Shown here: in pieces, positions 7,765-58,225 of the stretch
Position numbering within the stretch: position 1 is the stretch's first letter
How the letters are laid out: each line of letters begins with the position of its first letter
The notes under the pieces: generated by a model
Seen by the model: the letters and a program-made list of their open reading frames with translations, nothing else
Told to the model about the DNA's origin: nothing
Databases searched by the model: none
DNA from: Chrysemys picta bellii
Lineage: Eukaryota
DNA: 64,000 nucleotides
Direction of reading: 5' to 3'
Assembly (NCBI RefSeq): GCF_011386835.1
Contig: NC_088807.1
Span: 24,552,001 to 24,616,000 of the forward strand
Program-made: the position numbers and the translations under genes

Positions 7765-7892
7765 TCTCTACAAACTGAAGCTCTGAACAAAGGACTGACT
7801 GACCCATCCACGTGGTGGGTGTGTTCCAGAGGGACTTTACAATCCAGCAAACTCACCAATGCTGCTTAGAACCTGATATATAGACTTTGACG

Positions 7893-12468: not shown

Positions 12469-12570
12469 GTGAGCGAGGTAATATCTTTAATTGGCCAAAG
12501 ATATTACTCCACCCACCTTGGTCCTCTAATATCCTGGGACAGACACAGCTATAGCTACACTGCATACAAT
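12469..12570. mobile_element. Short remnant, probably Penelope-like, with 20-bp inverted arms
   Basis: GTGAGCGAGGTAATATCTTT / AAAGATATTACTCCACCCAC hairpin followed by CCTTGGTCCTCTAATATCCTGGGAC; family assignment from recall only. Confidence 0.5.
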
Positions 12571-12607
12571 AATGACTCAATAAGACAGCTTAAGAAGATG
12601 ACTCAAG

Positions 12608-13065
12608 GAAAGGATGGCTCAGAAAAACAACTCAAGAAGAGAATCCATCGCTGTTGACTCAAGACGACAACTCCAGAAAAGTATGGCTCAGAAAGACAAC
12701 TCAAGAAGAGAATCCATCGCTGTTGACTCAAGACGACAATTCCAGAAAAGTATGGCTCAGAAAGACAACTCAAGAAGAGAATCCATCGCTGTTGACTCAA
12801 GACGACAACTCCAGAAAAGTATGGCTCAGAAAGACAACTCAAGAAGAGAATCCATCGCTGTTGACTCAAGACGACAACTCCAGAAAAGTATGGCTCAGAA
12901 AGACAACTCAAGAAGAGAATCCATCGCTGTTGACTCAAGACGACAACTCCAGAAAAGTATGGCTCAAAAAGACAACTCAAGAAGAGAATCCATCGCTGTT
13001 GAGTCAAGACGACAACTCCAGAAAAGTATGGCTCGAAAAGACAACTCAAGAAGAGAATCCATCGA
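12608..13065. repeat. 69-bp minisatellite (6 full + 1 partial unit)
   Basis: Unit CTCCAGAAAAGTATGGCTCAGAAAGACAACTCAAGAAGAGAATCCATCGCTGTTGACTCAAGACGACAA; translates as MAQKDNSRRESIAVDSRRQLQKS repeats. Confidence 0.95.
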
Positions 13066-13098
13066 GGTGACTCAAAGAGAGGTTGATTCTAGAAAACA

Positions 13099-37413: not shown

Positions 37414-38361
37414 ATGGGGCCGGGGAACGGGACCGGCGTCTCCGAGTTCGTCCTGCTGGGCCTCGCCTCCCGCCCGGCCACGCGCCGCCTGCTCTTCCCC
37501 CTCTTCCTGGGCGCTTACCTGGCCACCCTGCTGGGCAACCTGCTGGTGTCCCTGCTGATCCGCCGGGACCCCCGCCTGCGCCGGGCCCCCATGTACTTCT
37601 TCCTGGCCCACCTCTCGCTGGCCGACGTGGGCTTCACCTCGGCCGCGGCCCCCACGGCGCTGGGGACCCTGGCGTTCGGGAGCTGGGCGGTGCCGTACGC
37701 CGCCTGCCTGGCCCAGAACTACGTCTTCATCACCTTCGGGGTGCTGGAGAACTTCCTGCTGGCCGTCATGGCCTACGACCGCTACCTGGCCGTCTGCCGC
37801 CCGCTCCGCTACACCGCCGTGATGAGCCCCGGGCGCCGCTGGGGGCTGGTGGGCACCTCCTGGGGGCTGGCCCAGCTCCACGCCCTGCTGCACACCCTGC
37901 TCCTCGCCCGCCTGCCCTTCCCGGCCCGCCCCCACCTCCGCCACTTCTTCTGCGACCTGCGCCAGCTCCTGGCCCTGGCCGACGGCGACACCAGGCCCAA
38001 CCACGCCGCCGTCTTGGCTGAGGGCAGCATGGCCGTGCTGGGGCCGCTGCTCCTGGTGGCTGGCTCCTACGGGCGCATCGTGGCCACGCTGGCCCGGCTG
38101 CCCGCCGCCCGGGGCTGGCGCCGGGCCCTCTCCACCTGCGGGGCCCACCTGGTCACGGTGGCCCTGTTCTATGGCACCGTCATCGGGCTTTTCTTCCGGC
38201 CCGCCGGCCACTACGCCCCCTGGCGGGACATGGTGGCCACCCTGCTCTACTCCACCGTCACCCCCCTCCTCAACCCCTTCATCTACAGCCTCCGCAACCA
38301 GGAGATGAAGGGGGCTCTCCGGCGGGTGCTGGGGAGGGGGCCGGTGCCCCAGGAAGCCTAG
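37414..38361 (+). CDS. Olfactory receptor, class II, OR1-like (315 aa, intact)
   Basis: NGT, GNLL, PMYFFLAHLSLAD, MAYDRYLAVCRPLRY, HFFCD, SY, ALSTCGAHL, PLLNPFIYSLRN; acceptor CCCCCGCAG 4 nt before ATG. Confidence 0.96.
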   Translation: MGPGNGTGVSEFVLLGLASRPATRRLLFPLFLGAYLATLLGNLLVSLLIRRDPRLRRAPMYFFLAHLSLADVGFTSAAAPTALGTLAFGSWAVPYAACLAQNYVFITFGVLENFLLAVMAYDRYLAVCRPLRYTAVMSPGRRWGLVGTSWGLAQLHALLHTLLLARLPFPARPHLRHFFCDLRQLLALADGDTRPNHAAVLAEGSMAVLGPLLLVAGSYGRIVATLARLPAARGWRRALSTCGAHLVTVALFYGTVIGLFFRPAGHYAPWRDMVATLLYSTVTPLLNPFIYSLRNQEMKGALRRVLGRGPVPQEA

Positions 38362-38695: not shown

Positions 38696-41250
38696 CTGGA
38701 GCAGGGTTTACTGAGTCAGAGGGGCGGGGCTGGGAGTCACAACATGGAAGCAGGTGAATTGCTGCCGCCGATGAGAAGCAGGGGCCCACCCCACTGTATT
38801 ATCCCCCTGCTGCGGCGGAACAGGGCAATGGGTCCATCTAGCCCGGTAGCCCGTCTTCAAGTGGCTGGTGGCAGGGGGAAGTGCAAAGCGCCCTCTGGTG
38901 GGGATTATGAGTTTCCCTGGCCCACCGCGGTAGCGTTCCCCCAAAGTCAGCACGCAGGGGGGCAGTCTGGGCTCGTCTGACTCTGCCCGTCCGGGGCCCC
39001 CACTCCTGGTTTAGGTCTTGTGGCAGAGAGTTCCGCAGGCTGCCGGTGACAATCAAAGGAGTTTCTTTTGTTCCTCATTCGAATCTGTGGCTTTTCCGTG
39101 TCCGCCCGGGGCGGATAAAACCCGCCGTTCCGGTCCGTGGGAAACGCTGACGTTCTGAAGCTTGATTTTATATTTCAAACGCAGCCGAAAAGCCGCAGTT
39201 GCCCCGGAGATGAAAATCCTGAATAATGTTGATTGGCCGCCCCTGGAAATGTCCCATTTCTGCAGTCACCGGCTTTCCTTTCCGTAAGGGAAATCGGTGT
39301 CATTTCAGTAAAGTCCATTTGCCCTGATCCAAATACTGTTATTAACGGTCCAGCCGGGCTAGGAAGGATTCGCTTTTTTAATTGCTCACCGGCGCTAACG
39401 AGGAAAACTGACAGCGGGGCGAAGCGACCCGGGACCCTTTCAGGGTTCGATTTCAGGACATTCCTTTGTCTGTCTTGACACGTGATGTGGACAGTGTGTG
39501 ATTTGACAACGATAAACTTTGATCTTTCGGAATCTCAGCCTCTCCTGTCGTTAACTAATTATCGTCTGACACCCCCCCCCCGCATCATTTGGACACCCCC
39601 AGTCAATTTCCCACAACGGTGGAAATGTACATCAATAAAAACTGGGGGGAGGGCGGAGAGGAGCTAACTGTGGGCAGGCGGGGGACTCGGGGAGGGCGTG
39701 GAGTGGGGGCAGAAAGAGGCGGAACGAGGGGGGGGCCTCGGGAAGGGGGCGGGGACTGAGGACAGGGCCTCGGGGGGAGGGGCAGAATAGGGGCGGGGCC
39801 TCAGGGGTGGAGCATCCCCCAGGGCAAAAATAAAAGTCAGCACCAATGGGATGTATAAATAAGGGAATCGTGAGTAGGAGCAGAGAGGTGATTTGATTGG
39901 GATTCAGCTGGGATCCTAGAAGTCCCTGAGTCACATGCCCCGGGGGAAAATGAATCCTTCCTGACCGCTGCACTGCCCTGAAGCATGAGAGTGGATCCTG
40001 GTCATGGGCTTACTGTCAAGCTGCCAGGATCATGCGTAGGCTGAGGGTTGCTCTCCCATGGCCCACAAAGGGAGGAGACAGCCTGAGGGACCCACAGGAG
40101 GGGATGAGCTAAATGGAAATTGAAGGGAAGGGACGTGGAAGGGCAGAGCTGAGGCATCACCTCGGTCCTGTTTTGGAGTCTCCCCTGTGCAGCTCTGGGT
40201 CCAGAGGAGCACTGGCCAGTGGAGGGGGCCCATTTTATCTCCCTCCCTCCTGTACATGCCGGCTGGCGTCTGGGACAGCCCCAGAGCTTTGCAGTCTCCC
40301 CCATGTTCCTCCCCATCACCGAAATCCCGTCTTAGCCTCTCCCATCAGGGAGCTCGAGCAAAACCGTGTGCTGACCCCCCACACCCACCCCTTCCAGTCC
40401 CGACCTGCCGACGGGTCTCGGGTTTGAAATGTTGAGCTGTGGTGGGAAAACCCAGCCAAAGAGCCCTGAGCCATTCCTAGCCATGACACGCAACCCACTG
40501 GCTGGCCCTGGCCGAGTCCTTGCCCCATCCCTTGCCTCAGTTTCCCCTCCCACCTAGCTCCCCTTCGCTGCCTCTCATTACGTGTCCGTGCAGTGACAAT
40601 TCACCATCCAATGTCCTTCTACACTGGCCTGTCTATCTCCCAGATCCCCATCGAGATCAGGGCCCCATCGTGCCGGGCGCTGCCCAGACCCCAACACCCT
40701 CATGGAGGCGATTTCCCTTGGTTTCCGGAATCGCAGAGACCCATCCTGGAATCCTGGGCCCAGTTCTGGGGAGACCCGGTTTTAAAAGGAGGTTGAAAAT
40801 CGGAGCAGGAGCAGAAGAGAGACGCAAACATGATTCAAGCCCCGTAGAGCCCAACCCAACGGGACCCAGCGACAAGGGGCAGGTCCGGATGGGGCAAACA
40901 ACTGAACCAGCTCGGATCACCTCAGCTCCCCTCCTCCTGTCCCTGCCGGCGGCTGCCAGCCGCTGCCCCCGCGTTAAACTCTGTGGGTGCAGGGCCACGG
41001 CGCCGACTGAAAATAGGGGGGTGTATTTGTAACGGTGAGCGTAGCTGGCCATCGGCATCACCTCCCAAGGGCGGGGATGGGGCTTCCTTCATGGGCAACT
41101 TGTCAAAGCAGCAGGAGGGTTTTTCCTAAACAATCTGCCCTAGGAACTGTTTGGGGGACTTCCTCCAAGCTGTGTAATTCACCCAGGAGGTCAGGAAATC
41201 TACGAGACGGCGCAGAGGGCTGGGCTGGGTCAGGAAATAATTTGACCCCT

Positions 41251-43240
41251 TGGAGCTACGGCCCATGGACCCTAGCTGGGATCTGGCCCCATTGACTCCA
41301 ATGGAGCTACGGCCCATGGACCCCAGCTGGGATCTGCCCCATTGACTCCAATGGAGCTACGGCCCATGGACCCCAGCTGGGATCTGCCCCATTGACTCCA
41401 ATGGAGCTATGGCCCATGGACCCCAGCTGGGATCTGCCCCATTGACTCCAATGGAGCTACGGCCCATGGACCCCAGCTGGGATCTGCCCCATTGACTCCA
41501 ATGGAGCTACGGCCCATGGACCCCAGCTGGGATCTGGCCCCATTGACTCCAATGGAGCTACGGCCCATGGACCCCATCTGGGATCTGCCCCATTGACTCC
41601 AATGGAGCTACGGCCCATGGACCCCAGCTGGGGTCTGCCCCATTGACTTCAATGGAGCTACGGCCCATGGACCCCAGCTGGGATCTGCCCCATTGACTCC
41701 AATGGAGCTACGGCCCATGGACCCCAGCTGGGATCTGCCCCATTGACTCCAATGGAGCTACGGCCCATGGACCCCAGCTGGGATCTGCCCCATTGACTCC
41801 AATGGAGCTACGGCCCATGGACCCCAGCTGGGATCTGCCCCATTGACTCCAGTGGAGCTACGGCCCATGGACCCCAGCTGGGATCTGGCCCCATTGACTC
41901 CAATGGAGCTACGGCCCATGGACCCCAGCTGGGATCTGCCCCATTGACTCCAATGGAGCTACGGCCCATGGACCCCAGCTGGGATCTGCCCCATTGACTC
42001 CAATGGAGCTACGGCCCATGGACCCCAGCTGGGAGCTGGCCCCATTGACTCCAATGGAGCTACGGCCCATTGACCCCAGCTGGGGTCTGCCCCATTGACT
42101 CCAGTGGAGCTACGGCCCATGGACCCCAGCTGGGATCTGGTCCCATTGACTCCAATGGAGCTACGGCCCATGGACCCCAGCTGGGATCTGCCCCATTGTC
42201 TCCAATGAAGCTACGGCCCATGGACCCCAGCTGGGATCTGCCCCATTGACTCCAATGGAGCTACGGCCCATGGACCCCAGCTGGGATCTGCCCCATTGAC
42301 TCCATTGGAGCTACGGCCCATGGACCCCAGCTGGGATCTGCCCCATTGACTCCAATAGAGCTACGGCCCATGGACCCCAGCTGGGATCTGCCCCATTGAC
42401 TCCATTGGAGCTACGGCCCATGGACCCCAGCTGGGATCTGGCCCCATTGACTCCAATGGAGCTACGGCCCATGGACCCCAGCTGGGATCTGCCCCATTGA
42501 CTCCATTGGAGCTACGGCCCATGGACCCCAGCTGGGATCTGGCCCCATTGACTCCAATGGAGCTACGGCCCATGGACCCCAGCTGGGATCTGCCCCATTG
42601 ACTCCAATGGAGCTACGGCCCATGGACCCCAGCTGGGATCTGCCCCATTGTCTCCAATGGAGCCACGTCCCATGGACCCCAGCTGGGATCTGCCCCATTG
42701 ACTCCAATAGAGCTACGGCCCATTGACCCCCAGCTGGGATCTGCCCCATTGACTCCAATGGAGCTACGGCCCATGGACCCCAGCTGGGATCTGCCCCATT
42801 GACTCCAATGGAGCTACGGCCCATGGACCCCAGCTGGGATCTGCCCCATTGACTCCAGTGGAGCTACGGCCCATGGACCCCAGCTGGGATCTGGTCCCAT
42901 TGACTCCAATGGAGCTACGGCCCATGGACCCTAGCTGGGATCTGCCCCATTGTCTCCAATGGAGCTACGGCCCATGGACCCCAGCTGGGATCTGCCCCAT
43001 TGTCTCCAGTGGAGCTACGGCCCATTGACCCCAGCTGGGATCTGCCCCATTGTCTCCAATGGAGCTACGGCCCATGGACCCCAGCTGGGATCTGCCCCAT
43101 TGACTCCATTGGAACTACGGCCCATGGACCCCAGCTGGGATCTGCCCCATTGTCTCCAGTGGAGCTACAGCCCATGGACCCCAGCTGGGATCTGCCCCAT
43201 TGTCTCCAGTGGAGCTACGGCCCATGGACCCCAGCTGGGA
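41251..43240. repeat. 50-bp tandem satellite (~40 units), paralog of 1-2445
   Basis: Same unit and identical 3' junction (GCTGGGAGCTGGCACTT). Confidence 0.97.
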
Positions 43241-44112
43241 GCTGGCACTTCCTTTGTTCTCCTGCTGGTCTCTGCTCGGAGTCCCTTGGGGTCGCCTGTG
43301 TGTGAATAAATCTCCTTGTGGGATCCTGGTTTTGCTGATTCTGTGCTGGAGTCATTCCTGAGCCGTCCTGTTCCTCAGCGCCCGACTCTCCTCCCATCTC
43401 CTGCCCCCTCGGAGAGGGATGTCGCTGCTGCTGCCGGTAGGGGGGTGCAGGCTGGGAGGGGGTGACAGGCACGGCAGGGGCCGAGACAAACCAGGTTTGC
43501 GGAGAGGTTGTGGAATCGGATCCCCTGTTCTGGGGGGCTTAGCTCCTCGGTGCCTGACGTGCGAGGGGCAGGGGACAGAGCCTGGAGCTGTGTGGTTGTG
43601 TGATTGTGTGTTTTGTGTTGTGCTATGAATGGGCAGTTGTGTGCCCGGTGCAGCCGGCTGACAACATTCAGGTGGGGTCAGTTCCCCCCGAGAAAACAGA
43701 CTTTCATCCACGTTCCGTAATGACAGGAACCTTCATTCCGAGAAGGTTAAAAACGTCCTTTCGAGCCCCGCGCAGCTTTTCTCTTGCCTAAAGCGTTTCT
43801 TTTCCTGTTATCCCAGCCCCATAGCTCTGCTACGCTCCTCAGATCACATCCAACAGCCCGTCTTTCCCGGCGACTGGGAACGAGTCGATTTGTGCCCGTA
43901 CCCGTTGATTTCGCGCCAAACAAAGATTTCCAGCGGTAATCACGGGAACGCGCAGGCCGGGCAAGTGAGAAAAACGCGGCTGGCGGACTAAGAGTCGATC
44001 GACGGATACTTTCTTTGCGTCTTTTGAAAGGTGAGGTGAACCGTTTGGGCTTTCGGGGTTCCTATGCCTGTAACGGGCCGAACGTCAGCATCGCTTGTCG
44101 TGAACTGTTTCT

Positions 44113-44290
44113 TTGTGGCACCGTAGAGACTAACAAATTTATTTGGGCATAAGCATTCGTGGGCTGCAGCCCACTTCACCGGCTTTAGCCCACGAAAGCT
44201 TATGCCCAAATAAATTTGCTAGTCTGTAAGGTGCCACAAGGACTCCTCGGGTTTTTTGCTGATACAGACTAGCACGGCCACCACTGAAAC
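44113..44290. mobile_element. Penelope-like inverted-terminus remnant (duplicate of 3321-3497)
   Basis: Arms 44113-44165 and 44187-44239 are reverse-complementary with 4 mismatches. Confidence 0.8.
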
Positions 44291-45507
44291 CTGAGTTCTG
44301 TTTCTGACGCCCCTGCTGGTCTAGCCCCCTCCAATTTCCCGCATTTAAATGGCTCGAATTGGAAAGGAAACCCTTAAAACCACGGCGCGACGTTAGCCGT
44401 CGCAATCATAGAGAAATAACCAAATTGTGCCCGGCCGTTCGGTTGTGCTTTGAGGTTAGCGAAACGAAACGTCTTTCCACAATCGAGGCAAAAAGACGCC
44501 ACCGTTTTTCCGAATTTTTCTTCTCCTGGGGGACGGGGGAGGGGGGGAACCTTTTACAAACTGTCGGGAGTTGCCCCCGAATGGAAATTGGGTTTTCTGA
44601 AATGCTCTGGCGTGGGGGCGGTGTTTGGACGTGTGCGTGTGTGTTGTTTGTAGGCTGTGCCGTGTCTGTGTTTGGGGAGGCGGGTGTGGTGTTGGTGCGT
44701 TCGATCCCAGGGGTCCCTCGCGGTCCCGTGAACCCCACTTCCCAGGGCTCCGTCCCATGTTCTCTGTAACCCCCCAGCCCTGGCAGAAAAGGGAAACGGC
44801 CCCTGTGGGGAATGGGACCAGCGCTCAGAGCCCAGTACATCCCCCCAGTAGGCTCTTTGGGGGCGAGGGACGTGTGATCTCAGCTGTGTGACAAAGGCAC
44901 CAAGAGCTTGGAACGAGGCAGAACCAGGGAGAGAACCCAGGAGTCCTGGCTCCCAGCCCCCTGCTCTAACCACTAGACCCCACACGCCTCACCTTGGAGC
45001 TGCTGGTCTAGTGCTCGGTGCCCTCCACCCGGGCTGTGACCGGTGCCCCCTTGGCAAACCCCTGCCCCGGCGGCTTGAATGGCTTCAGGTCGTAGCCCAT
45101 CAAGAAGGGGGAGAGCGGGACGGACAGCCGGCTCAGGGTGGATGGACCCATGGACACACACACTCACACAGCAGAGAGCCCCCTCCTCAGTGACCGACAA
45201 TCCCACACCAGCGCTCGGCTGGGAGGCCTGGACAGACAGACTCCGGGTCGGGAGGGACAGACAACCAGGCGTCCCTCTCCCCCGACACCGGGCCTAGGAA
45301 CCAGGAGCAGAATGTAGGCCGGTGTCAGGACACCTGGGATCCTGGGGAGGGTCCTGACACCCAGCCTCCCCCCCCTTTGCTCCAACCCGCCAGAGCTGGG
45401 AAGAGAACCCAGGAGTCCTGGCCCCCAGCACCCCCCACTCCCCCAGACACAGTCCAAACACCTTTTCCAGAACTGGAATCAGAATCCTAGAGTATGATTG
45501 TGTGTGA

Positions 45508-45770
45508 GGGCTGGGAGCCCGGACACCTGGGTTCTCTCCCTGGCTATGGGAGGGGAGTAGGGTCTGGTGGTTAGAGCAGGGGGGGCTGGGAGCCAGGACG
45601 CCTGGGTTCTCTCCCTGGCTCTGGGATGGGAGTGGGGTATGGTGGTTAGAGCAGGGGGCTGGGGGCCAGGACTCCTGGGTTCTCTCCCTGGCTCTGGGAG
45701 GGGAGTGGGGTCTGGTGGTTAGAGCAAGGTGGGCTGGGAGCCAGGACTCCTGGGTTCTACTCCCCGGTCT
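45508..45770 (+). repeat. tRNA-SINE-derived 75-bp array (shorter paralog of 4721-5277)
   Basis: Same unit, fewer copies. Confidence 0.8.
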
Positions 45771-45805
45771 TTGACCCGGGCTCCCTGCCTTCTCCCCACA
45801 GCCCC

Positions 45806-46855
45806 ATGGGTTGTGAGAACGGCAGCGAAATCTCCGAGTTCATTCTGTTGGGCCTGTCGTCCCGCCCGGGCCCTCAGCCCTTCCTCGTTCTCCTCTTCCT
45901 CCCGCTCTACGTGGCCGGCGTTCTGGGCAACTCCCTGATGGTGGCTCTGATCACGGTGGACCCCCGGCTCCACAGCCCCATGTACTCCCTCCTCCGCAGC
46001 CTCTCGCTGGTGGACGTGGGCCTGCTCTCGGTCACCGTCCCCCAGGCGCTGGCCCACGCCCTCTCTGGCCACCGGGCCGTGCCCTTCCACGCCTGCCTGG
46101 CCCAGTTCTTTTTCTTCTACGTCTTCGGCGTCTCCGACACGTTGCTCTTGGCCGCCATGGCCCTGGACCGCTACGTGGCCATCTGCGACCCGCTGCGCTA
46201 CCCGGCCGTGATGAGCCCCCGGGTCTGCCGGCGCCTGGTGGCCTCCTGCCTCGGCCTGGCCGTCCTCCACTCCGCCTTCCACGCCGGGCTGCTGCTGAGA
46301 CTCACCTACCGGGGCGGGAACCGGCTGCCCCACTTCTTCTGCGACCACCAGCCCCTGCTACGTCTGTCCTGCTCCCCGACGCGGGTCAACGAGGCGGCCA
46401 TCTTCTTCGAGGGCGGCTTGGTCATCCTGGGGCCCTTTCTCTTCATTGCGGCCAGCTACGCCCGCATCGGCCGGGCCGTGCTCCAGCGGCCGGCCTCGGA
46501 GAGGCGCCGGGCCCTCTCCACCTGCGGCTCCCACCTCACCATGGTGGCTTTGTTCTACGGGGCCATCGTCGGGGTCTACTTCCAGCCCGGGGCCAGCTAC
46601 TCGGCCCCCCGGGGGGCTGTCTTCTCCGTCATGTACACCATTGTCACCCCGGCTGCCAACCCCTTCGTCTACAGCCTGCGCAACAAGGACGTCCAGGGGG
46701 CTCTGCGGAGACTCATGGGGAGGGGGCGGTTTCTCCCAGAAGGCATGAGCCTTGGGGCCCTGGGGAAGGGGACTGGCTGGCTTAGGGGGGCGGGGAATGG
46801 GGCACGGGGCCTGTCCCCTCAAAGAGGTGTCAACTCCCATCCAGCCACAGCATGA
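45806..46855 (+). CDS. Olfactory receptor, OR1-like (349 aa), near-identical paralog of 5318-6367
   Basis: All OR motifs present; two amino-acid differences from the first copy (AVI->ALI, GWA->GRA). Confidence 0.95.
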   Translation: MGCENGSEISEFILLGLSSRPGPQPFLVLLFLPLYVAGVLGNSLMVALITVDPRLHSPMYSLLRSLSLVDVGLLSVTVPQALAHALSGHRAVPFHACLAQFFFFYVFGVSDTLLLAAMALDRYVAICDPLRYPAVMSPRVCRRLVASCLGLAVLHSAFHAGLLLRLTYRGGNRLPHFFCDHQPLLRLSCSPTRVNEAAIFFEGGLVILGPFLFIAASYARIGRAVLQRPASERRRALSTCGSHLTMVALFYGAIVGVYFQPGASYSAPRGAVFSVMYTIVTPAANPFVYSLRNKDVQGALRRLMGRGRFLPEGMSLGALGKGTGWLRGAGNGARGLSPQRGVNSHPATA

Positions 46856-47047
46856 TGGACAGGCTGGCTCAGGGGGGCGGGGAATGGGGCAGGGGGCCTT
46901 TCCCCTCTAGGGGACGCTAGTTCCCATCCAGCCCCAGGGCAGGGGTCTGACTGGCTCAGGCGGGTGGGGAACAGGGCCTTTCCTGTCTGTCCATGATGAA
47001 AATACAGACCTTTAAAGCCTTTGGCCTGATCCAGGCTACATCGTCCC

Positions 47048-49248
47048 TGTGACGCTGGCAGGCCAGGGGCGTTTGGCATTGGGACTTTATGGCGCGGCCG
47101 CAGGACGCCGTGTATTACCGGCATGTATTACCATGGTGCAGTGCCTGCTCTGTGACTATAGAAATGTTTGCTAAGACTGGGAACCCCCTGGTCAGGGGAG
47201 ATGCGTCACCCAGGGTGAAACGCTCGGGGTCCTCCCCAGCCCAGCAAACATCGGGCGCTAGATATCGGTGGACGTGAGCTCCCCTCATAGGCCTGGGATC
47301 CCCAGCTGGTTAGCCCTACAGACCGCAGAAAACTCACGTATTATAGCCCCTTTGGGCTGTCTCTGCATGGAATAGGACGCTGCATGGAACGGGGTGACCG
47401 TTTATAATATTATTGAGACCAACCTTACAAAATTGCAACGAATCTTACCAGATAGGCCATGTGAGGTATCAGCGGGGAAGGTAGGATTGGCTAACTATGA
47501 TAATCACGGCTCTACGTAGGTAGCATTAGTGTATGATGAGTTATAAATACGTGTGGTAGATTTGTACATCCAACTTGTGCTGTGTTTCTGGCGATTGGCA
47601 CCGGCACGAGCCAGCCTGCTTGATGGCCCATCAAAGGCCATCAGCAGGACATGTAGGGCCAGGCCGGTGGACAGAGACCTCTCAGGCTTTTCCATGCCAT
47701 GTGCTGTGAAGCTTGTGTTTGGGACACGGGATGTAGACGCCACATGTCAAAGGATATAAAAAGGCAGCTGCATCTTCTCCATTTTGTCTTCAGTCCTGCT
47801 CCTCCCCTCTGGAGTCACTTCTCTACACATTGAATCTATTTCCCCGTGTTAAATATCTTCACACCTCTTGGCAACTGGCTGAAATGGGCCATCTTGATTC
47901 TCACGACAAAAGTTTTTTTTTCTCCTGCTGTTAATAGCGCATCTTAATTAATTAGCCTCTTAGAGTTGGTCGGGCAACTTCCACCTTTTCATGTTCTCTA
48001 TGTATATATAGATCTCCTCACTAGATGTTCCATTCTATGCATCCGAAGAAGTGGGCTGTAGCCCACGAAAGCTTATGCTCAAATACACATGTTAGTCTCT
48101 AAGGTGCCACAAGTCCTCCTGTTCTTTTTGAGGATACAGACTAACACGGCTGCTACTCTGAAACGTCTCTACAAACTGAAGTTCTGAACAAAGGACTGAC
48201 TGACCCATCCACGTGGTGGGTGTGTTCCAGAGGGACTTTACAATCCAGCAAACTCACCAATGCTGCTTAGAACCTGATATATAGACTTTGACATCATAGA
48301 CTCATAGACTTTAAGGTCAGAAGGGACCATTATGATCATCTAGTCTGACCTCCTGCACGACGCAGGCCACAGAATCTCACCCACCCACTCCCAGAACAAA
48401 CCCCTGACCTATGTCTGAGCTATTGAAATCCTCAAATCGTAGTTTAAAGACTTCAAGGTGCAGAGAATCCTCCAGCAAGTGACCCGTGCCCCATGCTGCA
48501 GAGGAAGCCGGAAAAAAAACCCTGCCAATCTGCCCTGGAGGAAAATTCCTTCCCGACCCCAAATCTGGCGATCAGCTAAACCCTGAGCATGTGGGCAAGA
48601 CTCACCAGCCAGACACCCAGGAAAGAATTCTCTGTAGTAACTCAGATCCCACCTCAGCTAACATCCCATCACAGCCATTGGGCATATTTACCGCTAATAG
48701 TCAAAGATCAATGAATTGCCAAAATGAGGCTATCCCATCATAACATCCCCTCCATAAACTTATCAAGCTTAGTCTTGAAGCCAGATATGTCTTTTGCCCC
48801 CACTGCTCCCCTTGGAAGGTTGTTCCAGAACTTCACTCCTCTGAAACCTTCGTCTAATTTCAAGTCTAAACTTCCTGATGGCCAGTTTATATCCATTTGT
48901 CTTTGTATGTATGTGAGTGCTTTACCATGTAACAACTCTCTTCTCGTTCTTCCTTTCTGTTATAATAAACCTTTCATTTTAGATACTAAAGGACTGGCCG
49001 GCAGCGTGGTATTTTGGGTCAGATCCAACCTAATATTGACCTGGTAACGTGGCCGGCCCTTTGGGGTCAGAAGAACATTTCATTTAGTGAGCAGAGTTTT
49101 TAAATAACTTCTCACTGTACTGGCCCCAGGTGCTGATTGGGAGCCAGTTTGTGACTGGTTGGTGAGTCTAACTTCAGTATTACCCACCAGTCTGGGGAGT
49201 GTCCTTGGCATTTTCAGGGAGGGCTACCCTAGGCACCAACAGCTCACA
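47048..49248 (+). mobile_element. Solo LTR with nested PLE (47828-48165) and CR1 (48294-48900); duplicate of 6646-8848
   Basis: Colinear with the first copy, including the TCTCTACA TSD. Confidence 0.65.
48039..48078 (+). ncRNA. Minimal type I hammerhead ribozyme (U4C variant), duplicate of 7638-7677
   Basis: GCATCCGAAGAAGTGGGCTGTAGCCCACGAAAGCTTATGC. Confidence 0.75.
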
Positions 49249-49753
49249 GCGTGTCTTTCACGGTGCAAATAATTCCCTCGTTTCTCTCTCCTGGTGAATA
49301 AATCTTTAGTTCATTACAGGATTGGCAGCAAGTGCCGTCTTTGCCATCCACCCCCTCTATCTATCCCCACACACCCATCTATCTCTCTGTTTACCCATCC
49401 CCATACCCCTATCTATCATCTATCTATCTATCTATCCCCATCCACCCCCCTTCTCTCTCCCTATCCCCATCCACCCCCTCTATCTATCTATCTATCTATC
49501 CTCACCCACCCCCTCTATCTATCTATCCCCATCCACCCCGTATCTATCTCCATCCACCCCCTCTATCTATCTATCCCCATCCACACACCCCTCTCTCTAT
49601 CTATCCCCATCCACCCCCTCTATCTATCCCAATCCACCCCCCTTCTCTCTCTCTATCCCCAGCCATCCCCTCTCTCTATCTATCCCCATCCACCCCCTCT
49701 ATCTATCTATCCCCATCCACACACCCTTCTCTCTCTCTCTATCCCATACACCC

Positions 49754-50907
49754 TGTGACATACCCCTGGGGTATAACCTAGCCTGCGGGACCGCTGAGTC
49801 CTCTTAAACTCTCCAGCCTGGCCTGTCTCTCCTGACACCAGACCACTGACCAGCTACGAGCCTCTCCAGGTGCTGTGATCACTCAGCCATCAACACACAG
49901 GGACACCCCCAGCTGAGTTGCAGGAATGCTCTCTCAGCCACTCATGAATTATACACAGGGAGACCCCAGCCAATTTCCCCAGACCACCCGCCTTGCACCC
50001 CGGAGGTGTCCCCTCGTACGCCGCTCAGGACCTTCCCTTGAACAGTGCAAGCTCATTCATTCGTTCGCCCCCTCGTCAAAGGGAAGTGGACGCACACCCG
50101 CCTTTGTAATTGGAGTAGATTCCCCAACCACTTGCAACAAACTCACTGGGCAGGATAAACGGTTACACTGAGTTTATTAACTGCAGACAGCTCGATGGTC
50201 AGCGATTATAAGTGGTGGGCACAGAGGTCAAAGGTGGTTACCTAGGAAATAAAAATAGAGTCGCAGGCTAAATGTGAAACTTTATCAGACGAAGCAAGAT
50301 TGGCATCAGACGGCTTTTCTCCCCCGCCCCGGCCGGACGTTCCAGGCAGCTCCCGGTTCTCAATATACAGGCTGGATTCCCTTCCAGCCTGGGACCAATC
50401 TCCCCAGTTCAAAGTCTTCGTCGCCCGAGCGATCGTCCAGGTGATGCGGGAGGGGAGAGGCCCAGTGGTGACGTTATGGACCCTCGTTGATACTTTCTCT
50501 CCAGGTGCTGGAAAGCTCCTGGCCATGACGTGGGGGTCAGGCCGTCCCCATGGGGTACGTGCCCCCTCTAAGCAGTCTCCAGGAGAGTGGATTCTTCTTG
50601 ATGGGCCCTCAACGCCTGTCCAGCCAATCGAGATGTAAAGCCGTCTTGTCCGTGTGCTGCTCCTTTCGTGCCACTGAAAGGCCGGCTGTGGGCGTTCCCA
50701 CTGGCCACGTATTTCAGTGACAAACACGCAGCAATATCTCCTCGCTTCCCATCCAACGAGACCACGCACCAGCCAACAGGGCAGCAACGTTCAGCCGACC
50801 GTGTCGTCTCAAACAATACCTCCCAAGGCATGCGTTGCCCCAAACCCATCACAACCACATCACCGGGGTGAATATGGGGGTGCTATTTTGAGGTACCAAG
50901 TGTCACA
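49754..50907 (-). mobile_element. Solo LTR, duplicate of 9479-10631
   Basis: TGTGACA / TGTCACA termini, colinear sequence. Confidence 0.7.
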
Positions 50908-51085
50908 GGCCCCGTTCTGCAATTTTCCCCCATCCTCTTTTTAAAGGCGCACCCCAAAACTGGGCTCCAGCTACAGTCGCACCAGGGCCAAACACACACG
51001 GAAAATCACCTCTCTGCTCCAACTCCAGGTTCCCCTGGTAGAGGTGCCTGATTAGCCACAGTGCAGGCGACAACTGGTGGTTCTG

Positions 51086-51406
51086 CCCTGTCTCTCAGCT
51101 CCCAGAGTCCCCCGCCTCCAGCTCAGTGCAGCGGGGCCTGGAGACCCCCAGCGGCCCTAAGCACCTGAACCAGCCTGCGTCCCGCCGAGGGAGTCGCACC
51201 CGCCGCTGACGAGGGCAAAGCGCCGCGACCTCCCCCAAGGGCCTTTTGCTAACGAGCCCAGCTGGGAGGCGGCCCCATTGGAACTCCGCAGACTGAAAGG
51301 CGAATTAACGGGGGCCCCGGAGAGCCCTGAGCCATCTGCCCGGCACTGGAAAACCAGAGCTAACGAGAGGAAGTTATTGCTGGGCGTCTGAGTGGGACAG
51401 AGATGA
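51086..51406. promoter_or_regulatory. Candidate homeodomain/O-E element, duplicate of 10810-11130
   Basis: TCCCCCAAGGG, CTTTTGCTAACGAG, TTAACGGG-g-GCCCCGGAGA, CTAACGAG. Confidence 0.5.
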
Positions 51407-51569
51407 TGACTTAAGAAGACAACCCAAAAAGATGACTCAACTAGATGACAGCTCAAACAGAAGACTCTAGAAAAAAGATGACTCAGGAAGAAGACAGGTC
51501 CAAAAGAGGACATCAGAAGAAAGTTACTGAAGAAGACAACAACAGAAGAAGTTGAAGGAAGACAATGGC

Positions 51570-52331
51570 TGTAACAAAGTGGGAATTTTTTGATGACGCC
51601 TGATGTGTGCCTCAGTTTCCCCTACAGGCTGCATTGTTACCTAGTGGGTGAAAAGGGACAGTTTGCACTCGGGGCAGGTGAAGACACAAGTGTGGCTGGT
51701 GCCTCGCTGTCCGGGGCCTTGGGTCCCGTATCAATGGAGCTCTTGAGAAGACAATGGCAACTCCAATCACCAGGACGTGAGCACCTACCAACCAACAACC
51801 CAGAGCGATCTGGACGGCTCTGCCTCTCCGCAGGGGGGCTGAGCCGCATCTCCCCAGCTCGGGAACAAAGGACGAGGGCAGGGGGTGAGGTGGAAGTCAG
51901 TTCAGGCACACCTTGGAGCCTGGTAAAGGAGATGAGATGGAGGGACAGATGGAGCTTGACCAATGAGTTTCACTAAAGCCAAGCTGGGCTTTCAATCCTT
52001 TTGTGATAACCAAAGACTTCCTATGCTGGGTTCCGGCGGACTAATAACCCCGACTGTGTGACCGCGTTGGCTGAGTGTCCCTGAAGATGCTGGCAGAGGA
52101 GGTGCATTGCTCCCTAAGAAAGGACAAGTCTCCTTCGGGGGTCTGTCTCAGTGGGGCTCGCTGAACGGAGCTCATGGTGTGAAGCAGAGGTGCTGACACC
52201 TCAGTGATTCAGTTTAAGGAGGAGGTGAAGCTGTAGAATGGGACCCCGAGGGGGTCGGGCACATTGAATGGGGTTCCTCCCAGAGACTACCCCAGCTGGA
52301 GCCATTGCACCAATCCCGTGGATCCGTGCCA
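51570..52331 (+). mobile_element. Solo LTR, duplicate of 11294-12055
   Basis: TGTAACA...GTGCCA with ATGGC/ATGAC TSD. Confidence 0.75.
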
Positions 52332-52744
52332 ATGACTCAAGGAGAAGATGACACCAGAAGAATCAAGACAATTCAGGAAGACAACACAAGAGGATGACTC
52401 AGGGAAACGGCTAAAAAGGAAGAAAACGCCAATGGAAGATGACTCTAGAAGACAACTGGAGAAGACTCAAGACTGAGATTACTCAAGAAGGAGATTATTC
52501 AAGAAAACAACAACTGAAAGAAGACTCCAAAAGACAGCAACTCAAAAGGAAAGGTGCTCAAAAAGAAAACAACTCAACAAGATTCAAAACACTGATGACT
52601 CAGTAAGATGATTTAAGATGATGACTCGTCAACTTGAAAAGGACGACTCAAGTAGAAGTTGACTGAGAAAGACAACTCAAGAAGAAGAGGACTCAAAAAT
52701 ATCAAGAAGACTCCAAAAGGTAAGGACTCAATAAGAAAGTCAAG

Positions 52745-52846
52745 GTGAGCGAGGTAATATCTTTAATTGGCCAAAGATATTACTCCACCCACCTTGGTCC
52801 TCTAATATCCTGGGACAGACACAGCTATAGCTACACTGCATACAAT
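52745..52846. mobile_element. Short hairpin remnant, probably Penelope-like; duplicate of 12469-12570
   Basis: Identical inverted arms. Confidence 0.5.
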
Positions 52847-52888
52847 AATGACTCAATAAGACACTTAAGGAGATGACTCAAGGAAAGG

Positions 52889-55636
52889 ATGGCTCAGAAA
52901 GACAACTCAAGAAGAGAATCCATCGCTGTTGACTCAAGACGACAACTCCAGAAAAGTATGGCTCAGAAAGACAACTCAAGAAGAGAATCCATCGCTGTTG
53001 ACTCAAGACGACAACTCCAGAAAAGTATGGCTCAGAAAGACAACTCAAGAAGAGAATCCATCGCTGTTGACTCAAGACGACAACTCCAGAAAACTCCATT
53101 GCTATCTACATACTGCACAGACCACAGTGAGAGATTATGCCATACGTTATCAAAGAAACTGAGGAACCACCTGATCAGCATCCTATACAGCAAACAGAAA
53201 AACATCAAGAAAGAGCTCTCCAACCTGGAGACTCTCATAAATAACCAACCCTCCACACAAACGGACTTTACTAAAATAAGACAGGAGATCTACATTACAC
53301 ACTTCACCTCTCTACAAAGGAAAAAGGACCGTAAGCTGTCTAAAATCCTACCTGCCACATGGGGCCACAACAGGGGTACCCCTAACTCACCCAGCAATAT
53401 CGTCAATTTATCCAGCTACACACTCAACCCAGCAGAAGAGTCTGTCCTATCTCGGGGACTCTCCTTTTGCCCCAGCACCCCCACGAACATGATACAGTTC
53501 TGTGGTGATCTGGAAGCCTACTTTCGCCGCCTCCGACTCAAAGAATACTTTCACGAGAACACTGAACAGCGCACTGATACACAGATACCCTCCCACCAAC
53601 AACACAGGAAGAAGAACTCCACATGGACTCCTCCTGAGGGTCGAAATGACAGTCTGGACCTATACATAGAATGCTTCCGCCGACGTGCACAGGCAGAAAT
53701 TGTGGAAAAACAACATCGCTTGCCTCATAACCTAAGTCGTGCAGAACGCAATGCCATCCACAGCCTCAGAAACCACCCTGACATTATCATCAAAGAGGCT
53801 GATAAAGGAGGTGCTGTTGTCATCATGAACAGGTCTGACTACCAGAAGGAGGCTGCCAGACAACTCTCCAATACCCAATTCTACAGGCCGCTTTCCTCAG
53901 ATCCCACTGAGGAATATACTAAGAAACTACACCATCTACTCAGGACACTCCCTACACTAACACAGGAACAAATCAACATACCCTTAGAGCCCCGACCGGG
54001 GTTATTCTATTTACTACCTAAGATCCACAAACCTGGAAACCCTGGACGCCCCATCATCTCGGGCATTGGCACTCTCACTGAAGGACTGTCTGGATATGTG
54101 GACTCCCTACTCAGACCCTACGCCACCAGCACTCCCAGCTATCTCCGTGACACCACAGATTTCCTGAGGAAACTACAATGCATTGGTGACCTCCCAGAAA
54201 ACACCATCCTAGCCACCATGGATGTAGAGGCTCTCTACACAAACATCCCACATACAGATGGAATACAAGCTGTCAGGAACAGTATCCCTGATGATGACAC
54301 AGCACAACTTATTGCTGAGCTCTGTGACTTTATCCTCACGCACAATTATTTCAAATTTGGTGACAATATATACCTCCAGACCAGTGGCACCGCTATGGGC
54401 ACCCGCATGGCCCCACAATATGCCAACATTTTTATGGCTGACCTGGAACAACGCTTCCTCAGCTCCCGTCCACTCATGCCCCTTCTCTACCTACGCTATA
54501 TTGATGACATCTTCATCATCTGGACCCATGGGAAGGAGGCCCTGGAAGAATTCCACCATGCTTTCAACAGCTTCCACCCCACCATCAACCTCAGCCTGGA
54601 CCAATCTACACGGGAGGTCCACTTCCTGGACACCACCGTACAAATAAGCGATGGCCACATTAACACCACCCTGTACCGAAAACCCACCGACCGCTACGCC
54701 TACCTTCATGCCTCCAGCTTCCACCCCGGTCACACCACACGATCCATCGTCTACAGCCAAGCACTGAGGTACAATCGCATCTGCTCCAACCCCTCAGACA
54801 GAGACCAACACCTACAAGATCTTCACCAAGCATTCTCAAAACTACAACACCCACACAAGGAAATAAAGAAACAAATCAACAGAGCCAGACGTGTACCCAG
54901 AAGCCTCCTGCTACAAGACAGGCCCAGAAGAGAAACCAACAGAACTCCACTGGCCATCACCTACAGTCCTCAGCTTAAACCTCTCCAACGCATCATCAGT
55001 GATCTACAACCCATCCTGGACAATGATCCCTCACTTTCACAGACCTTGGGAGGCAGGCCAGTCCTCGCCCACAGACAACCTGCCAACCTTAAACATATTC
55101 TCACCAGCAACCACGGACCGCACCATAACAACTCTAACTCAGGAACCAACCCATGCAACAAACCTCGATGCCAACTCTGCCCACATATCTACACCAGCAA
55201 CACCATCACTGGACCTAACCAGATCAGCTACAACATCACCGGCTCATTCACCTGCACGTCCACCAATGTTATATATGCCATCATATGCCAGCAATGCCCC
55301 TCTGCTATGTACATTGGCCAAACTGGACAGTCACTACGCAAGAGGATAAATGGACACAAGTCAGATATCAGGAATGGCAATATACAAAAACCTGTAGGAG
55401 AACACTTCAACCTCCCTGGCCACACAATAGCAGATGTAAAGGTTGCCATCTTACAGCAAAAAAACTTCAGGACCAGACTCCAAAGAGAAACTGCTGAGCT
55501 CCAGTTCATTTGCAAATTTGACACCATCAGATCAGGATTAAACAAAGACTGTGAATGGCTATCCAACTACAGAAACAGTTTCTCCTCCCTTGGTGTTCAC
55601 ACCTCAACTGCTAGCAGAGCACCTCACCCTCCCTGA
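52889..55636 (+). CDS. Chimeric 915-aa ORF: three 23-aa satellite repeats fused to Penelope-like reverse transcriptase and GIY-YIG endonuclease
   Basis: RT motifs LFYLLPKIHK, GRPIISG, TMDVEALYTNIP, GTAMGTRMAPQYANIFM, YLRYIDDIF, VHFLD; Cys linker CNKPRCQLC; GIY-YIG NVIYAIICQQCPSAMYIGQT..R..GH..EHF; no internal stop. Confidence 0.9.
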   Translation: MAQKDNSRRESIAVDSRRQLQKSMAQKDNSRRESIAVDSRRQLQKSMAQKDNSRRESIAVDSRRQLQKTPLLSTYCTDHSERLCHTLSKKLRNHLISILYSKQKNIKKELSNLETLINNQPSTQTDFTKIRQEIYITHFTSLQRKKDRKLSKILPATWGHNRGTPNSPSNIVNLSSYTLNPAEESVLSRGLSFCPSTPTNMIQFCGDLEAYFRRLRLKEYFHENTEQRTDTQIPSHQQHRKKNSTWTPPEGRNDSLDLYIECFRRRAQAEIVEKQHRLPHNLSRAERNAIHSLRNHPDIIIKEADKGGAVVIMNRSDYQKEAARQLSNTQFYRPLSSDPTEEYTKKLHHLLRTLPTLTQEQINIPLEPRPGLFYLLPKIHKPGNPGRPIISGIGTLTEGLSGYVDSLLRPYATSTPSYLRDTTDFLRKLQCIGDLPENTILATMDVEALYTNIPHTDGIQAVRNSIPDDDTAQLIAELCDFILTHNYFKFGDNIYLQTSGTAMGTRMAPQYANIFMADLEQRFLSSRPLMPLLYLRYIDDIFIIWTHGKEALEEFHHAFNSFHPTINLSLDQSTREVHFLDTTVQISDGHINTTLYRKPTDRYAYLHASSFHPGHTTRSIVYSQALRYNRICSNPSDRDQHLQDLHQAFSKLQHPHKEIKKQINRARRVPRSLLLQDRPRRETNRTPLAITYSPQLKPLQRIISDLQPILDNDPSLSQTLGGRPVLAHRQPANLKHILTSNHGPHHNNSNSGTNPCNKPRCQLCPHIYTSNTITGPNQISYNITGSFTCTSTNVIYAIICQQCPSAMYIGQTGQSLRKRINGHKSDIRNGNIQKPVGEHFNLPGHTIADVKVAILQQKNFRTRLQRETAELQFICKFDTIRSGLNKDCEWLSNYRNSFSSLGVHTSTASRAPHPP

Positions 55637-55787
55637 TTGAACTAACCTCGTTATCTCCACACTGATATATACCTGCCTCTGGAGATTTCCATTACTTGCA
55701 TCTGAAGAAGTGAGGTTCTTACCCACGAAAGCTTATGCTCCCAGTACTTCTGTTAGTCTCAAAGGTGCCACAGGACCCTCTGTTGCT
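53094..55787 (+). mobile_element. Penelope-like retroelement (probably Neptune-like), 5'-truncated, young
   Basis: 2694 bp between 12-bp direct repeats AACTCCAGAAAA (53082-53093 / 55788-55799); open RT-EN frame; hammerhead-bearing 3' end; absent from the paralogous array. Confidence 0.93.
55698..55738 (+). ncRNA. Minimal type I hammerhead ribozyme with canonical core in the PLE 3' end
   Basis: GCA-T-CTGAAGA-A-GTGAGG..ACCCAC-GAAA-GCT-TA-TGC; one mismatch in stem II; palindromic AAGCTT. Confidence 0.8.
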
Positions 55788-56146
55788 AACTCCAGAAAAG
55801 TATGGCTCAGAAAGACAACTCAAGAAGAGAATCCATCGCTGTTGACTCAAGAAGACAACTCCAGAAAAGTATGGCTCAGAAAGACAACTCAAGAAGAGAA
55901 TCCATCGCTGTTGACTCAAGACGACAACTCCAGAAAAGTATGGCTCGGAAAGACAACTCAAGAAGAGAATCCATCGAGGTGACTCAAAAAGAGGTTGATT
56001 CTAGAAAACAACTCAAAATTCAGCCATACCTCATCAGCCTCCGGCCCCCAAAGCTCACTTTAGAGCCAACCTCTCGACTGTACAGTGGAGTTCTTGCACT
56101 CCATCTCCTGGGCATTGGGGCGATCCAAGTCCACCCCAAGCAGCAC

Positions 56147-56760
56147 CTACGTCCCCAGAGAGGCCACCATCCGGCTGATGGCTTTTCTCAGAGCCCCCCT
56201 CATCTCATCACTCCTCGGGGTGTAGATGAAGGGGTTGAGCATGGGGGTGACCACAGTGTACGTGACAGCTGAAACAGCACCCTTTTCAGCAGAGAAGCTG
56301 GACAAGGGCTGGAAGTAGACCCAGATAACGGTGCTGAAGAAGACCGCTACGACAGCCAGGTGGGAGCCACCGGTTGAGAAGGCCTTGCGCTTGCCGTCGG
56401 GCAAAGGGACCTTGATGACGGGGGACACAATGGCGACGTAGGAGAGGAGGATGAAAACCAGCGCCCCGTTGACCACCAGGGCCTCCTCGGTGTGCACCAC
56501 CAGGGCATTGAGCCCAGTGTCGGAGCAGGAGAGGTTCAGCAGGGGGAAGATGTCGCAGAAGAAGTGGGGGACCCTGTTGGAGGCGGGACGCAGGTGTGCA
56601 GCAGGGAGTGGAGGTGAGAGATCAGCCAGGAGGTGATGCCGAAGGCGATGAAGAAAGACATCTGGGCCAGGCAATCGGCGTTCTGGTCGCCCGTGGGCAA
56701 GACGGAGGAAGTCGGATGGGACCAGGTGCAGAGACGAGCAGCCAGGCTGGGGAGCCGGGC
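56147..56760 (-). pseudogene. Olfactory receptor pseudogene (internal deletion and frameshift)
   Basis: Intact TM5-TM7 (HFFCDIFPLLNLSC...KAFSTGGSHL...PMLNPFIY). In another frame DCLAQMSFFIAFGIT joins directly to SWLISHLHSLLHT, so the DRY region is missing; no N-terminus recognisable. Confidence 0.9.
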
Positions 56761-57109
56761 CTCGGCTTTCAGTTGAGATGGCTGCAGGATACGATGAGAC
56801 CCCCGCGCACACACACACACCCCTAGGACAACGGGGGATGGGAGCCAGCCCAGGAACCGCCACCGTGTCAGAGGAGGACTTCGCTGGATATCGTTTAACC
56901 AGATTCAGGGCTTCCGAGCCTAGACAGGTCCACTGGGATCTCCTGCAAAACACAGGCTGGGCCATGGCCCTGAGGGGGCCAACTTTTCTTTTTGCCAGTG
57001 GGTGCTGCTCTCCGCCCCTCCCCCCCGTGCGAATGGTGGGCGGGGCCTCAGGGGAAGAGGCCGAGCAGGGGCAGGGCCTCAGGGCACCGTGGCTCACAAA
57101 ATATTAATC

Positions 57110-58225
57110 CATCCCTCCCCTCTATCCATCCATCCATCCATCCTCACTATCCATCCATCCATCCACCCATCCCTCCCCACTATCCATCCACCCATCCATC
57201 CCTCCCCACTACCCATCCATCCACCCATCCCTCCCCTCTATCCATCTATCCANNNNNNNNNNNNNNNNNNNNNNNNNNNNNNNNNNNNNNNNNNNNNNNN
57301 NNNNNNNNNNNNNNNNNNNNNNNNNNNNNNNNNNNNNNNNNNNNNNNNNNNNNNNNNNNNNNNNNNNNNNNNNNNNNNNNNNTCCACTCATCCCTCCCCA
57401 CTATCCATCCACCCACCCATCCATCCCTCCCCACTACCCATCCATCCATCCCTTCCCACTATCCCATCCCTCCCTCCATCCATCCACCCACCCATCCCTC
57501 CCCTCCATCCATCCACTCACCCCATCCATCCATCCCTTCCTTCTATCCATCCACCCATCCCTCCCCACTATCCATCCACACATCCATCCATCCATCCCTC
57601 CCCACTATCCAATCACCCACCCATCCATCCCTCCTCACTATCCATCCATCCATCCCTTCCCTCTATTCATCCATCCACCCACCCCATCCATCCATCACTC
57701 CCCTCCATCCATCCATCCACTCACCCCATCCATCCTTCCCCTCTATCCATCCACCCATCTCTCCTCTTTATCAATCCACACTCCTCCCATCCATCCACCC
57801 CCATCTAAACTATATATCTCCCTATACACACCCCCTTTATCTATATGCAAACACCCCCCCATCTAATCTATCTATCATCTCATAGACACTCCTCTTTCTC
57901 TGTCTATTTATCTATCCAACCCTATACACACCATCTATCTATCTATCCCCGTCCACCCCATCTATCTATCTATCCCCATCCACCCCCTCTATCTATCTAT
58001 CCCCATCCCACCATCCCCCCATCTATCTATCTATCTATCTATCTATCCCCGTCCACCCCATCTATCTATCTATCNNNNNNNNNNNNNNNNNNNNNNNNNN
58101 NNNNNNNNNNNNNNNNNNNNNNNNNNNNNNNNNNNNNNNNNNNNNNNNNNNNNNNNNNNNNNNNNNNNNNNNNNNNNNNNNNNNNNNNNNNNNNNNNNNN
58201 NNNNNNNNNNNNNNNATCTATCTAT
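57110..58225. repeat. CCAT / ATCT simple repeats containing two N gaps
   Basis: Low-complexity tracts around gaps 57253-57382 and 58075-58215. Confidence 0.9.

Follow-up and report, generated by a model that had tools for sequence, protein, structure and literature searches.

Can a retroelement copy that has lost its own 5' end regain a start codon from the repeat into which it landed, and does it become a gene thereby? This question is raised by a locus of the painted turtle Chrysemys picta bellii, which we studied in a stretch of 64,000 nucleotides (RefSeq assembly GCF_011386835.1, contig NC_088807.1, positions 24,552,001 to 24,616,000 of the forward strand). This whole stretch is called the window, and positions are given in its coordinates unless another sequence is named. 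It belongs to CM062334.1 of assembly GCA_011386835.2, given that L003 matches window 1-26544 with 100% identity. A Penelope-like element (PLE) lies here within an array of 69-bp repeats, and one open reading frame (ORF) runs from the repeat into the element. We consider it very probable that an abundant, apparently Neptune-type PLE inserted here recently and neutrally as a dead-on-arrival copy, and that the in-frame ATG codons are there by chance. This kind of insertion is ordinary, and we see no sign of the 915-codon frame being a gene. The features that carry the argument are as follows.

52876..53093, + strand: upstream part of the 69-bp minisatellite (TRF, 3.2 copies; three identical 23-codon units from 52889)
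52889..55636, + strand: chimeric open frame in which 67 residues encoded by the repeat precede 848 from the PLE, with an in-frame stop upstream at 52874
53082..53093, + strand: left copy of the 12-bp target-site duplication, AACTCCAGAAAA
53089..53093, + strand: GAAAA microhomology, common to target and PLE (family contigs match from 53089, not 53094)
53094..55787, + strand: 5'-truncated PLE of presumed Neptune type, 2,694 bp, with a C-terminal GIY-YIG domain and a CX4CxxC linker
55788..55799, + strand: right copy of the target-site duplication, AACTCCAGAAAA, identical to the left copy
55788..55992, + strand: downstream part of the minisatellite (TRF, 3.0 copies), where the array resumes after the PLE
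12614..13096, + strand: paralogous empty site within a segmental duplication, an uninterrupted array of six units and a partial one

The PLE is a genuine insertion, as is evident from the target duplication, the register of the array and the empty sites in a paralogue and in orthologues. The 2,694-bp element splits the array in two, and past the right copy of the target duplication the 69-bp units continue in exact register. The uninterrupted paralogous array belongs to a segmental duplication within the window (467-12818 versus 41251-53093, 96–97% identity); the window has a masked N run at 13099-13598. Both flanks can be aligned at 92–96% identity with Malaclemys terrapin (L004), Emys orbicularis (L005) and Terrapene carolina triunguis (L006), where the orthologous site has no PLE and the array consists of only two to three degenerate proto-units. 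Minisatellite expansion and PLE insertion thus appear confined to the Chrysemys lineage, because both are absent from the three other emydids examined. The initial annotation had called the repeat a satellite; the 69-bp repeat is real, while its contig depth, only a few-fold above that of the unique flank, and the proto-units elsewhere make it a locus-specific minisatellite instead. The peptide that it encodes has no homologue among 5.8 billion proteins searched.

The proto-units differ among the emydids. In Emys and Terrapene (L005 17012-17392, L006 16873-17253) the first one measures 84 bp, not 69 bp, and Malaclemys (L004 16938-17386) carries about three degenerate repeat units. An array of five to six full 69-bp units is found in Chrysemys only, among the four emydids compared.

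The following motifs can be located in the PLE part of the frame.

53801..53812, + strand: DKG motif of the PLE N-terminal region (DKGG, aa 305-308; by motif reading, the motif being named in PMC8557442)
54497..54508, + strand: reverse transcriptase active site YIDD (aa 537-540; Pfam and motif reading)
55154..55180, + strand: CX4CxxC Zn-finger-like linker CNKPRCQLC (aa 756-764), upstream of the endonuclease (motif reading)
55268..55324, + strand: GIY-YIG core VIYAI...MYIGQT (aa 794-812; Pfam and motif reading)

The reverse transcriptase is matched by Pfam RVT_1 with an E value of 4.8e-11. The GIY-YIG domain scores 22.4 bits, marginally below the Pfam cutoff of 22.6; the string VIYAI...MYIGQT...RINGH...GEHF can nevertheless be read, and homologues carry a precomputed PF01541 match. 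Protein searches returned 2,834 homologues at E<=1e-10; identity is up to 92% among turtle matches and 37–51% among full-length invertebrate and metagenomic relatives. The peptide RGLSFCP (aa 189-195), aligned to RGLKFCP and RGLNFCP in relatives, would, in our own reading of the motif name, represent the GxKF/Y motif. Because it has a CX2-5CxxC linker, as described for the Neptune and Nematis clades (PMC8557442), the element may be assigned to the canonical PLEs with C-terminal endonuclease (EN+) and to the Neptune type, the clade being read from the linker motif alone.

In the ORF listing of the window, 52889-55636 on the + strand forms a single ATG-initiated frame of 915 codons encoding 915 aa. 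The initial annotation had described a 915-aa frame covering reverse transcriptase, Cys linker and GIY-YIG with no stop, and ORF, Pfam and motif evidence bears this out. Each 69-bp unit contributes one ATG (52889, 52958 and 53027), in every case with A at -3 and G at +4, so that its picture of a stop-free 23-codon repeat with three ATGs in good context also holds after a check of frames and start contexts. Of the three + strand frames of the unit, one is open and contains the ATG, another is open and ATG-less, and the last contains a TGA; the one ATG-bearing frame is the one used by the 915-codon ORF. The boundaries of ORF, repeat and element likewise agree with the structural reading of a 5'-truncated PLE that landed in frame in the repeat. 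The first in-frame ATG within the PLE part is codon 201 (53489), which leaves 715 aa including DKG, reverse transcriptase and endonuclease; 715 aa is also the length of the NCBI model for a related Gopherus copy. The repeat ATGs do open the 915-aa frame, but the premise that the copy needed them is weak, given that an internal ATG already opens 715 aa.

The extent of the truncation can be read from relatives that retain the 5' end. Full-length relatives have 39–52 extra N-terminal residues, with their residue 40–53 aligning with the first PLE residue of the painted turtle copy. They share the N-terminal block KLAQ..SDI.FL..CK..DIVPKGLxIKNPL, of which the painted turtle copy keeps the final PL only, and whose conservation in the protein alignment extends from turtles to PLEs of echinoderms and metagenomes. 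We further compared two longer copies together with their flanks: L002 of Gopherus flavomarginatus (90.7% identity) and L001 of Lepidochelys olivacea (80.6%). Both are laid out with an upstream terminal-repeat tail that includes the hammerhead and ends in ...GCTGCT, a leader of ~45 nt and then an ATG (MQGTAFSRMEWKS...), which lies 45 codons ahead of the codon equivalent to window position 53090. Missing from the painted turtle copy are these 45 codons and the ~45 nt leader (~180 nt of the unit) as well as the upstream pseudo-long terminal repeat (pseudo-LTR). The full ORF is estimated at ~893 aa; distant full-length relatives have 881–888 aa. The initial annotation was right that the PLE lacks its own 5' end, and the alignment to full-length copies that it had proposed for measuring the missing N-terminus puts the loss at 45 codons, a small one in the light of the longer copies.

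No pseudo-LTR was found in the painted turtle copy, which has only the 3' terminal region 55637-55787 and nothing PLE-like upstream of 53089. This is a property of the truncated copy, not of the PLE family, the longer relatives L001 and L002 having upstream repeats. We also considered whether the lost N-terminus held the named GxKF/Y motif and rejected this, as RGLSFCP is retained and the lost block is unnamed. In the Gopherus sequence L002, an inverted 5'-truncated copy (2051-3245) abuts the upstream pseudo-LTR (3248-3426), which is followed by the ORF, a classic PLE architecture; this ORF runs into a stop soon after the conserved N-terminal block (directly after YYTDQ).

At the 5' junction, family contigs read ...ATGGACATCATACCAAATGGACTGAAGGT before 53089, encoding MDIIPNGLKV, and L001 and L002 read ...AAGGTAAAAAATCC at this position. 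The junction originally placed at 53093/53094 is therefore real, but its breakpoint is ambiguous across 53089-53093, where GAAAA occurs in target and element. This microhomology stands in like codon phase in both partners (CAG AAA AGT and GTG AAA ACT), and therefore the frames of repeat and PLE coincide. At the other end, 55787 is the 3' terminus of the family, at which dozens of contigs end. The decamers CTCCATTGCT at the 5' end and CTCTGTTGCT at the 3' end were considered as the remnant of an upstream tandem copy; this was rejected, since the longer copies show that the 5' sequence represents ORF codons 47-50.

These observations can be combined into a simple course of events. Target-primed reverse transcription would have started at the usual 3' end of the element (...CTCTGTTGCT), copied ~94% of the unit and halted ~180 nt short of its 5' end. 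The cDNA end would then have been joined to the upstream target via the 5-nt microhomology GAAAA, giving the 12-bp target duplication. With a locus-specific array of 69-bp units, placed in an olfactory-receptor cluster spacer, as target, the single ATG-bearing open frame of the repeat would have met the frame of the element by chance, yielding 915 codons, and this frame would still be open through the youth of the copy, not through use. Incomplete reverse transcription, microhomology-assisted joining and target-site duplication are familiar from 5'-truncated LINE-1 insertions. All of these recur in the course proposed here, LINE-1 being another retroelement class with another endonuclease and the joining step being an extrapolation for PLEs. 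By this analogy, microhomology-assisted joining after incomplete reverse transcription may be regarded as the simplest mechanism. With its empty paralogous and orthologous sites, 12-bp duplication, 5-nt microhomology and defined 3' start, the locus represents a clean textbook PLE insertion. It adds one more sign of very recent, probably Neptune-type activity in the painted turtle lineage and otherwise matters little.

That the copy is young is consistent with the state of its family, which is hugely repeated and was very recently active in the painted turtle lineage. The summed depth of family contigs rises from ~4e4 at the 5' end of the element to 1.0–1.4e6 at its 3' end in two large sequencing runs, with 17–68 in the unique flank, and run X16 yields 9,045 contigs at >=99% identity to the PLE. 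Sixteen sites differ from the family majority, 8 of them synonymous and 8 nonsynonymous against a random expectation of 23:77 (p=0.015); these sites were classed one by one against the majority letter of the family. They seem to have been inherited with the subfamily rather than to reflect decay after insertion, and the chance that 16 random changes gain no stop is in any case ~0.53. The comparison of changes with the PLE family, which the initial annotation had suggested, thus gives 8:8 over 16 sites. The 915-codon frame is open because the copy is young, and no selection is needed.

The presence of upstream start codons likewise calls for no special explanation. Since stop codons outnumber the ATG codon three to one, about 1 in 4 of any truncated ORFs should have an in-frame ATG upstream that is met ahead of a stop. 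In the 69-bp target the chance of hitting the ATG-bearing frame is 1 in 3. As the genome contains thousands of copies, many ATG-opened chance frames must exist. The caveat attached to the original proposal, that selection is not implied by the in-frame landing, proved sound.

The leading alternative, which we nonetheless regard as very unlikely, is that the chimeric frame is transcribed, for instance from a cryptic promoter or by read-through from the OR1B1-like gene on the + strand (45806-46855), and translated from a repeat ATG. The product would be a reverse transcriptase/endonuclease with a charged repeat N-tag, which could work in trans on RNAs of PLEs or retrozymes. If true, this would be a rare truncated retroelement that regains translation from a host repeat. 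Several points argue for it and weigh against a neutral insertion. The 915-codon frame is fully intact, with every catalytic motif kept (DKG, YIDD, CX4CxxC and GIY-YIG), and all three repeat ATGs stand in the good Kozak context described above. On the + strand, the 11.2-kb NCBI model P0121 of the paralogous upstream receptor extends through the empty-site array, the region equivalent to the insertion site, so that sense read-through into the region is conceivable. Moreover, none of the matched sequencing runs is recorded as RNA and only contigs were at hand, so that we infer the lack of expression; X2, a run guessed to be RNA, covers non-genic flank at low depth and is probably DNA.

Against such a chimeric gene, no gene is called over the ORF in the assembly gene set (L007 17084-19831), though the neighbouring receptors and a receptor fragment of 171 aa are called. 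A collection of 15 billion proteins, which includes the neighbouring olfactory receptor, has none of four versions of the ORF with different start codons. No contig among those shown bridges 53093/53094 and the sampled junction words occur in none of the runs listed, which carries little weight for junction unitigs of ~55 nt. The copy is without an upstream pseudo-LTR, which is thought to be the site of the PLE promoter (PMC11167929), and its 45 conserved N-terminal residues are gone. The insertion is absent from the paralogue and from the three related species, leaving no conservation to argue from, and the ~1 in 4 chance of an upstream ATG applies across thousands of copies. The proposal that the copy was rescued as a translatable reverse transcriptase/endonuclease thus finds no support in gene call, protein record or the distribution of the insertion.

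It is very unlikely, too, that the repeat ATGs are irrelevant and that any transcript is translated from the internal ATG at 53489 into 715 aa. A start at codon 201 would keep DKG, reverse transcriptase and endonuclease, and the Gopherus model has the same length; a scanning ribosome, however, would meet the good-context repeat ATGs first if they are on the transcript, and evidence for expression is equally wanting. More specific, and in our view highly improbable, is a scenario in which read-through or a cryptic promoter in the A-rich repeat leads to an N-terminally swapped, catalytically competent reverse transcriptase/GIY-YIG protein that supplies PLE activity in trans, with a tag whose length varies with minisatellite copy number. 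We give almost no credence to an assembly chimera or a mis-joined PLE copy put into the array: the region is repeat-rich, with N runs nearby and a segmental duplication, and three junction-specific sampled words (60-nt junction) occur in none of the runs listed, where junction unitigs of ~55 nt would easily be lost from contig sets, but a chimera would create neither the perfect 12-bp target duplication nor the exact array register, and the 3' end of the element is the canonical end of the family, as in dozens of other copies.

Seen as a neutral insertion, the locus fits well among known systems. With the canonical C-terminal EN+ PLEs of Neptune type (Arkhipova 2006; Craig et al. 2021, PMC8557442) it shares the single ORF with N-terminal DKG, YIDD reverse transcriptase, CX2-5CxxC linker and C-terminal GIY-YIG, and further the frequent 5' truncation, the terminal-repeat hammerhead and the very high copy number in non-avian reptiles. 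It differs from them in nothing of kind; the painted turtle copy is solitary, with neither upstream pseudo-LTR nor tandem or inverted partner, and lacks the 45 N-terminal codons. No PLE other than PAc (Poseidon of Anolis carolinensis) has been reconstituted in vitro (Frangieh et al. 2024, PMC11167929), and the promoter of PAc likely resides in the pseudo-LTR (PMC11167929). The turtle family has in common with PAc the pseudo-LTR–ORF–pseudo-LTR unit, a hammerhead near the pseudo-LTR/ORF boundary and a defined internal start of reverse transcription that fixes the 3' end of copies, with 5'-truncated templates giving shorter insertions (PMC11167929). In contrast, the PAc ORF starts inside the hammerhead, whereas the first ATG of the turtle family lies ~45 nt past the end of the tail, and PAc is a member of the Penelope/Poseidon clade, to which the CX2-5CxxC linker is not ascribed.

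PLE frames continuous with non-PLE coding sequence are also seen in the Caretta models named 'zinc finger protein 480/708/189-like' (P0018-P0020). Those are splice-joined annotation products on real host genes, whereas the partner in the painted turtle is a non-genic minisatellite and no model exists. Across sea turtles, gene models P0018-P0020, P0010 and P0031 join PLE reverse transcriptase sequence to host genes of the zinc-finger, Maestro HEAT-repeat or DnaJ kind, and probably represent either exonised PLEs or artefacts of annotation.

The 3' terminal region of the element contains one further candidate feature.

55698..55738, + strand: putative minimal (dimer-type) hammerhead motif, starting 62 nt after the stop, with a predicted cut between 55734 and 55735 at a CUU triplet

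It reads GCAU, CUGAAGA, A, GUG(A)GGU-UCUU-ACCCAC, GAAA, GC, UU, AUGC, with a helix I of GCAU/AUGC and a helix II of 6 bp with a bulge, and matches the core C3 U4 G5 A6 N7 G8 A9/G12 A13 A14/A15.1-U16.1/H17; by chance, 0 matches to this pattern are expected. Helix II pairs at 100% over the six related tails compared and shows 2 compensatory pairs, against 15–50% pairing for shifted partners, which is modest evidence. Core position N7 is A, G or U across these six tails, and two older copies have C at position 4. Minimal PLE hammerheads occur in turtles and show low activity in vitro, as dimers only (PMC4209133). With those described by Cervera and de la Pena (2014, PMC4209133) the motif shares the extra base between 9 and 10.1, the G10.1-C11.1 pair, the long helix II, the 4-bp helix I and the palindromic 15.2-16.2 positions.

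Rfam reported no hammerhead at gathering score in the window, nor at E<=10 in the 301 bases 55560-55860, which is expected if no model covers a motif lacking helix III. Minimum free energy folding of the 151-nt 3' region was not better than that of shuffles (z -0.07), as expected because the motif is of the dimer type. We therefore regard 55698-55738 as a putative minimal PLE hammerhead at the level of motif and covariation only. The hammerhead that had been noted 62 nt past the stop accordingly survives as a minimal PLE motif, not as an Rfam match.

Older PLE tail fragments of a second subfamily lie at 7634-7727, 48035-48128, 3397-3456 and 44189-44248. Their helix II is GUGGGCU/AGCCCAC and their hammerhead core is mutated, reading CCGAAGA for CUGAAGA. 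They occur in both duplicated segments and are therefore older than the segmental duplication. At 55694/55695 the match of many family contigs sets in (8–10 per whole-genome run), and what precedes this point in them is unrelated; very short copies that begin at the 5' edge of the hammerhead motif therefore make up a large class.

The surroundings of the locus form the spacer of an olfactory-receptor cluster, with intact receptors at 5318-6367, 16721-17677, 37414-38361 and 45806-46855, and with one incomplete receptor next to the array.

56168..56653, - strand: olfactory-receptor fragment, C-terminal half only (Pfam, tblastn; in the gene set a 171-aa product, 56147-56661)

Between the stop of this fragment and the array lie ~155 bp, and the PLE runs antisense to the fragment. 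The place expected for its N-terminal half is occupied by the repeats of 57107-57803, a long ATCC-rich microsatellite/minisatellite with periods of 4, 21, 25, 29, 58 and 204 and N runs on its flanks. On the other side, 52741-52796 forms an inverted repeat of 24 nt, 83% complementary with an 8-nt loop, within a region (52700-52923) whose contig depth is ~100-fold that of the unique flank; it is a fragment of another abundant repeat, possibly a fold-back PLE tail. The segmental duplication measures ~12.5 kb at an offset of ~40.3–40.8 kb and doubles the OR1B1-like receptor (5318-6367 and 45806-46855, proteins 99.4% identical). The two segments have diverged about as much as Chrysemys and Malaclemys have at the locus (96.3%). 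Each duplicated segment also carries a tandem array of ~2 kb with a 50-bp period (1-2449 and 41242-43244), visible as a ladder of BLAST offsets that differ by ~50.

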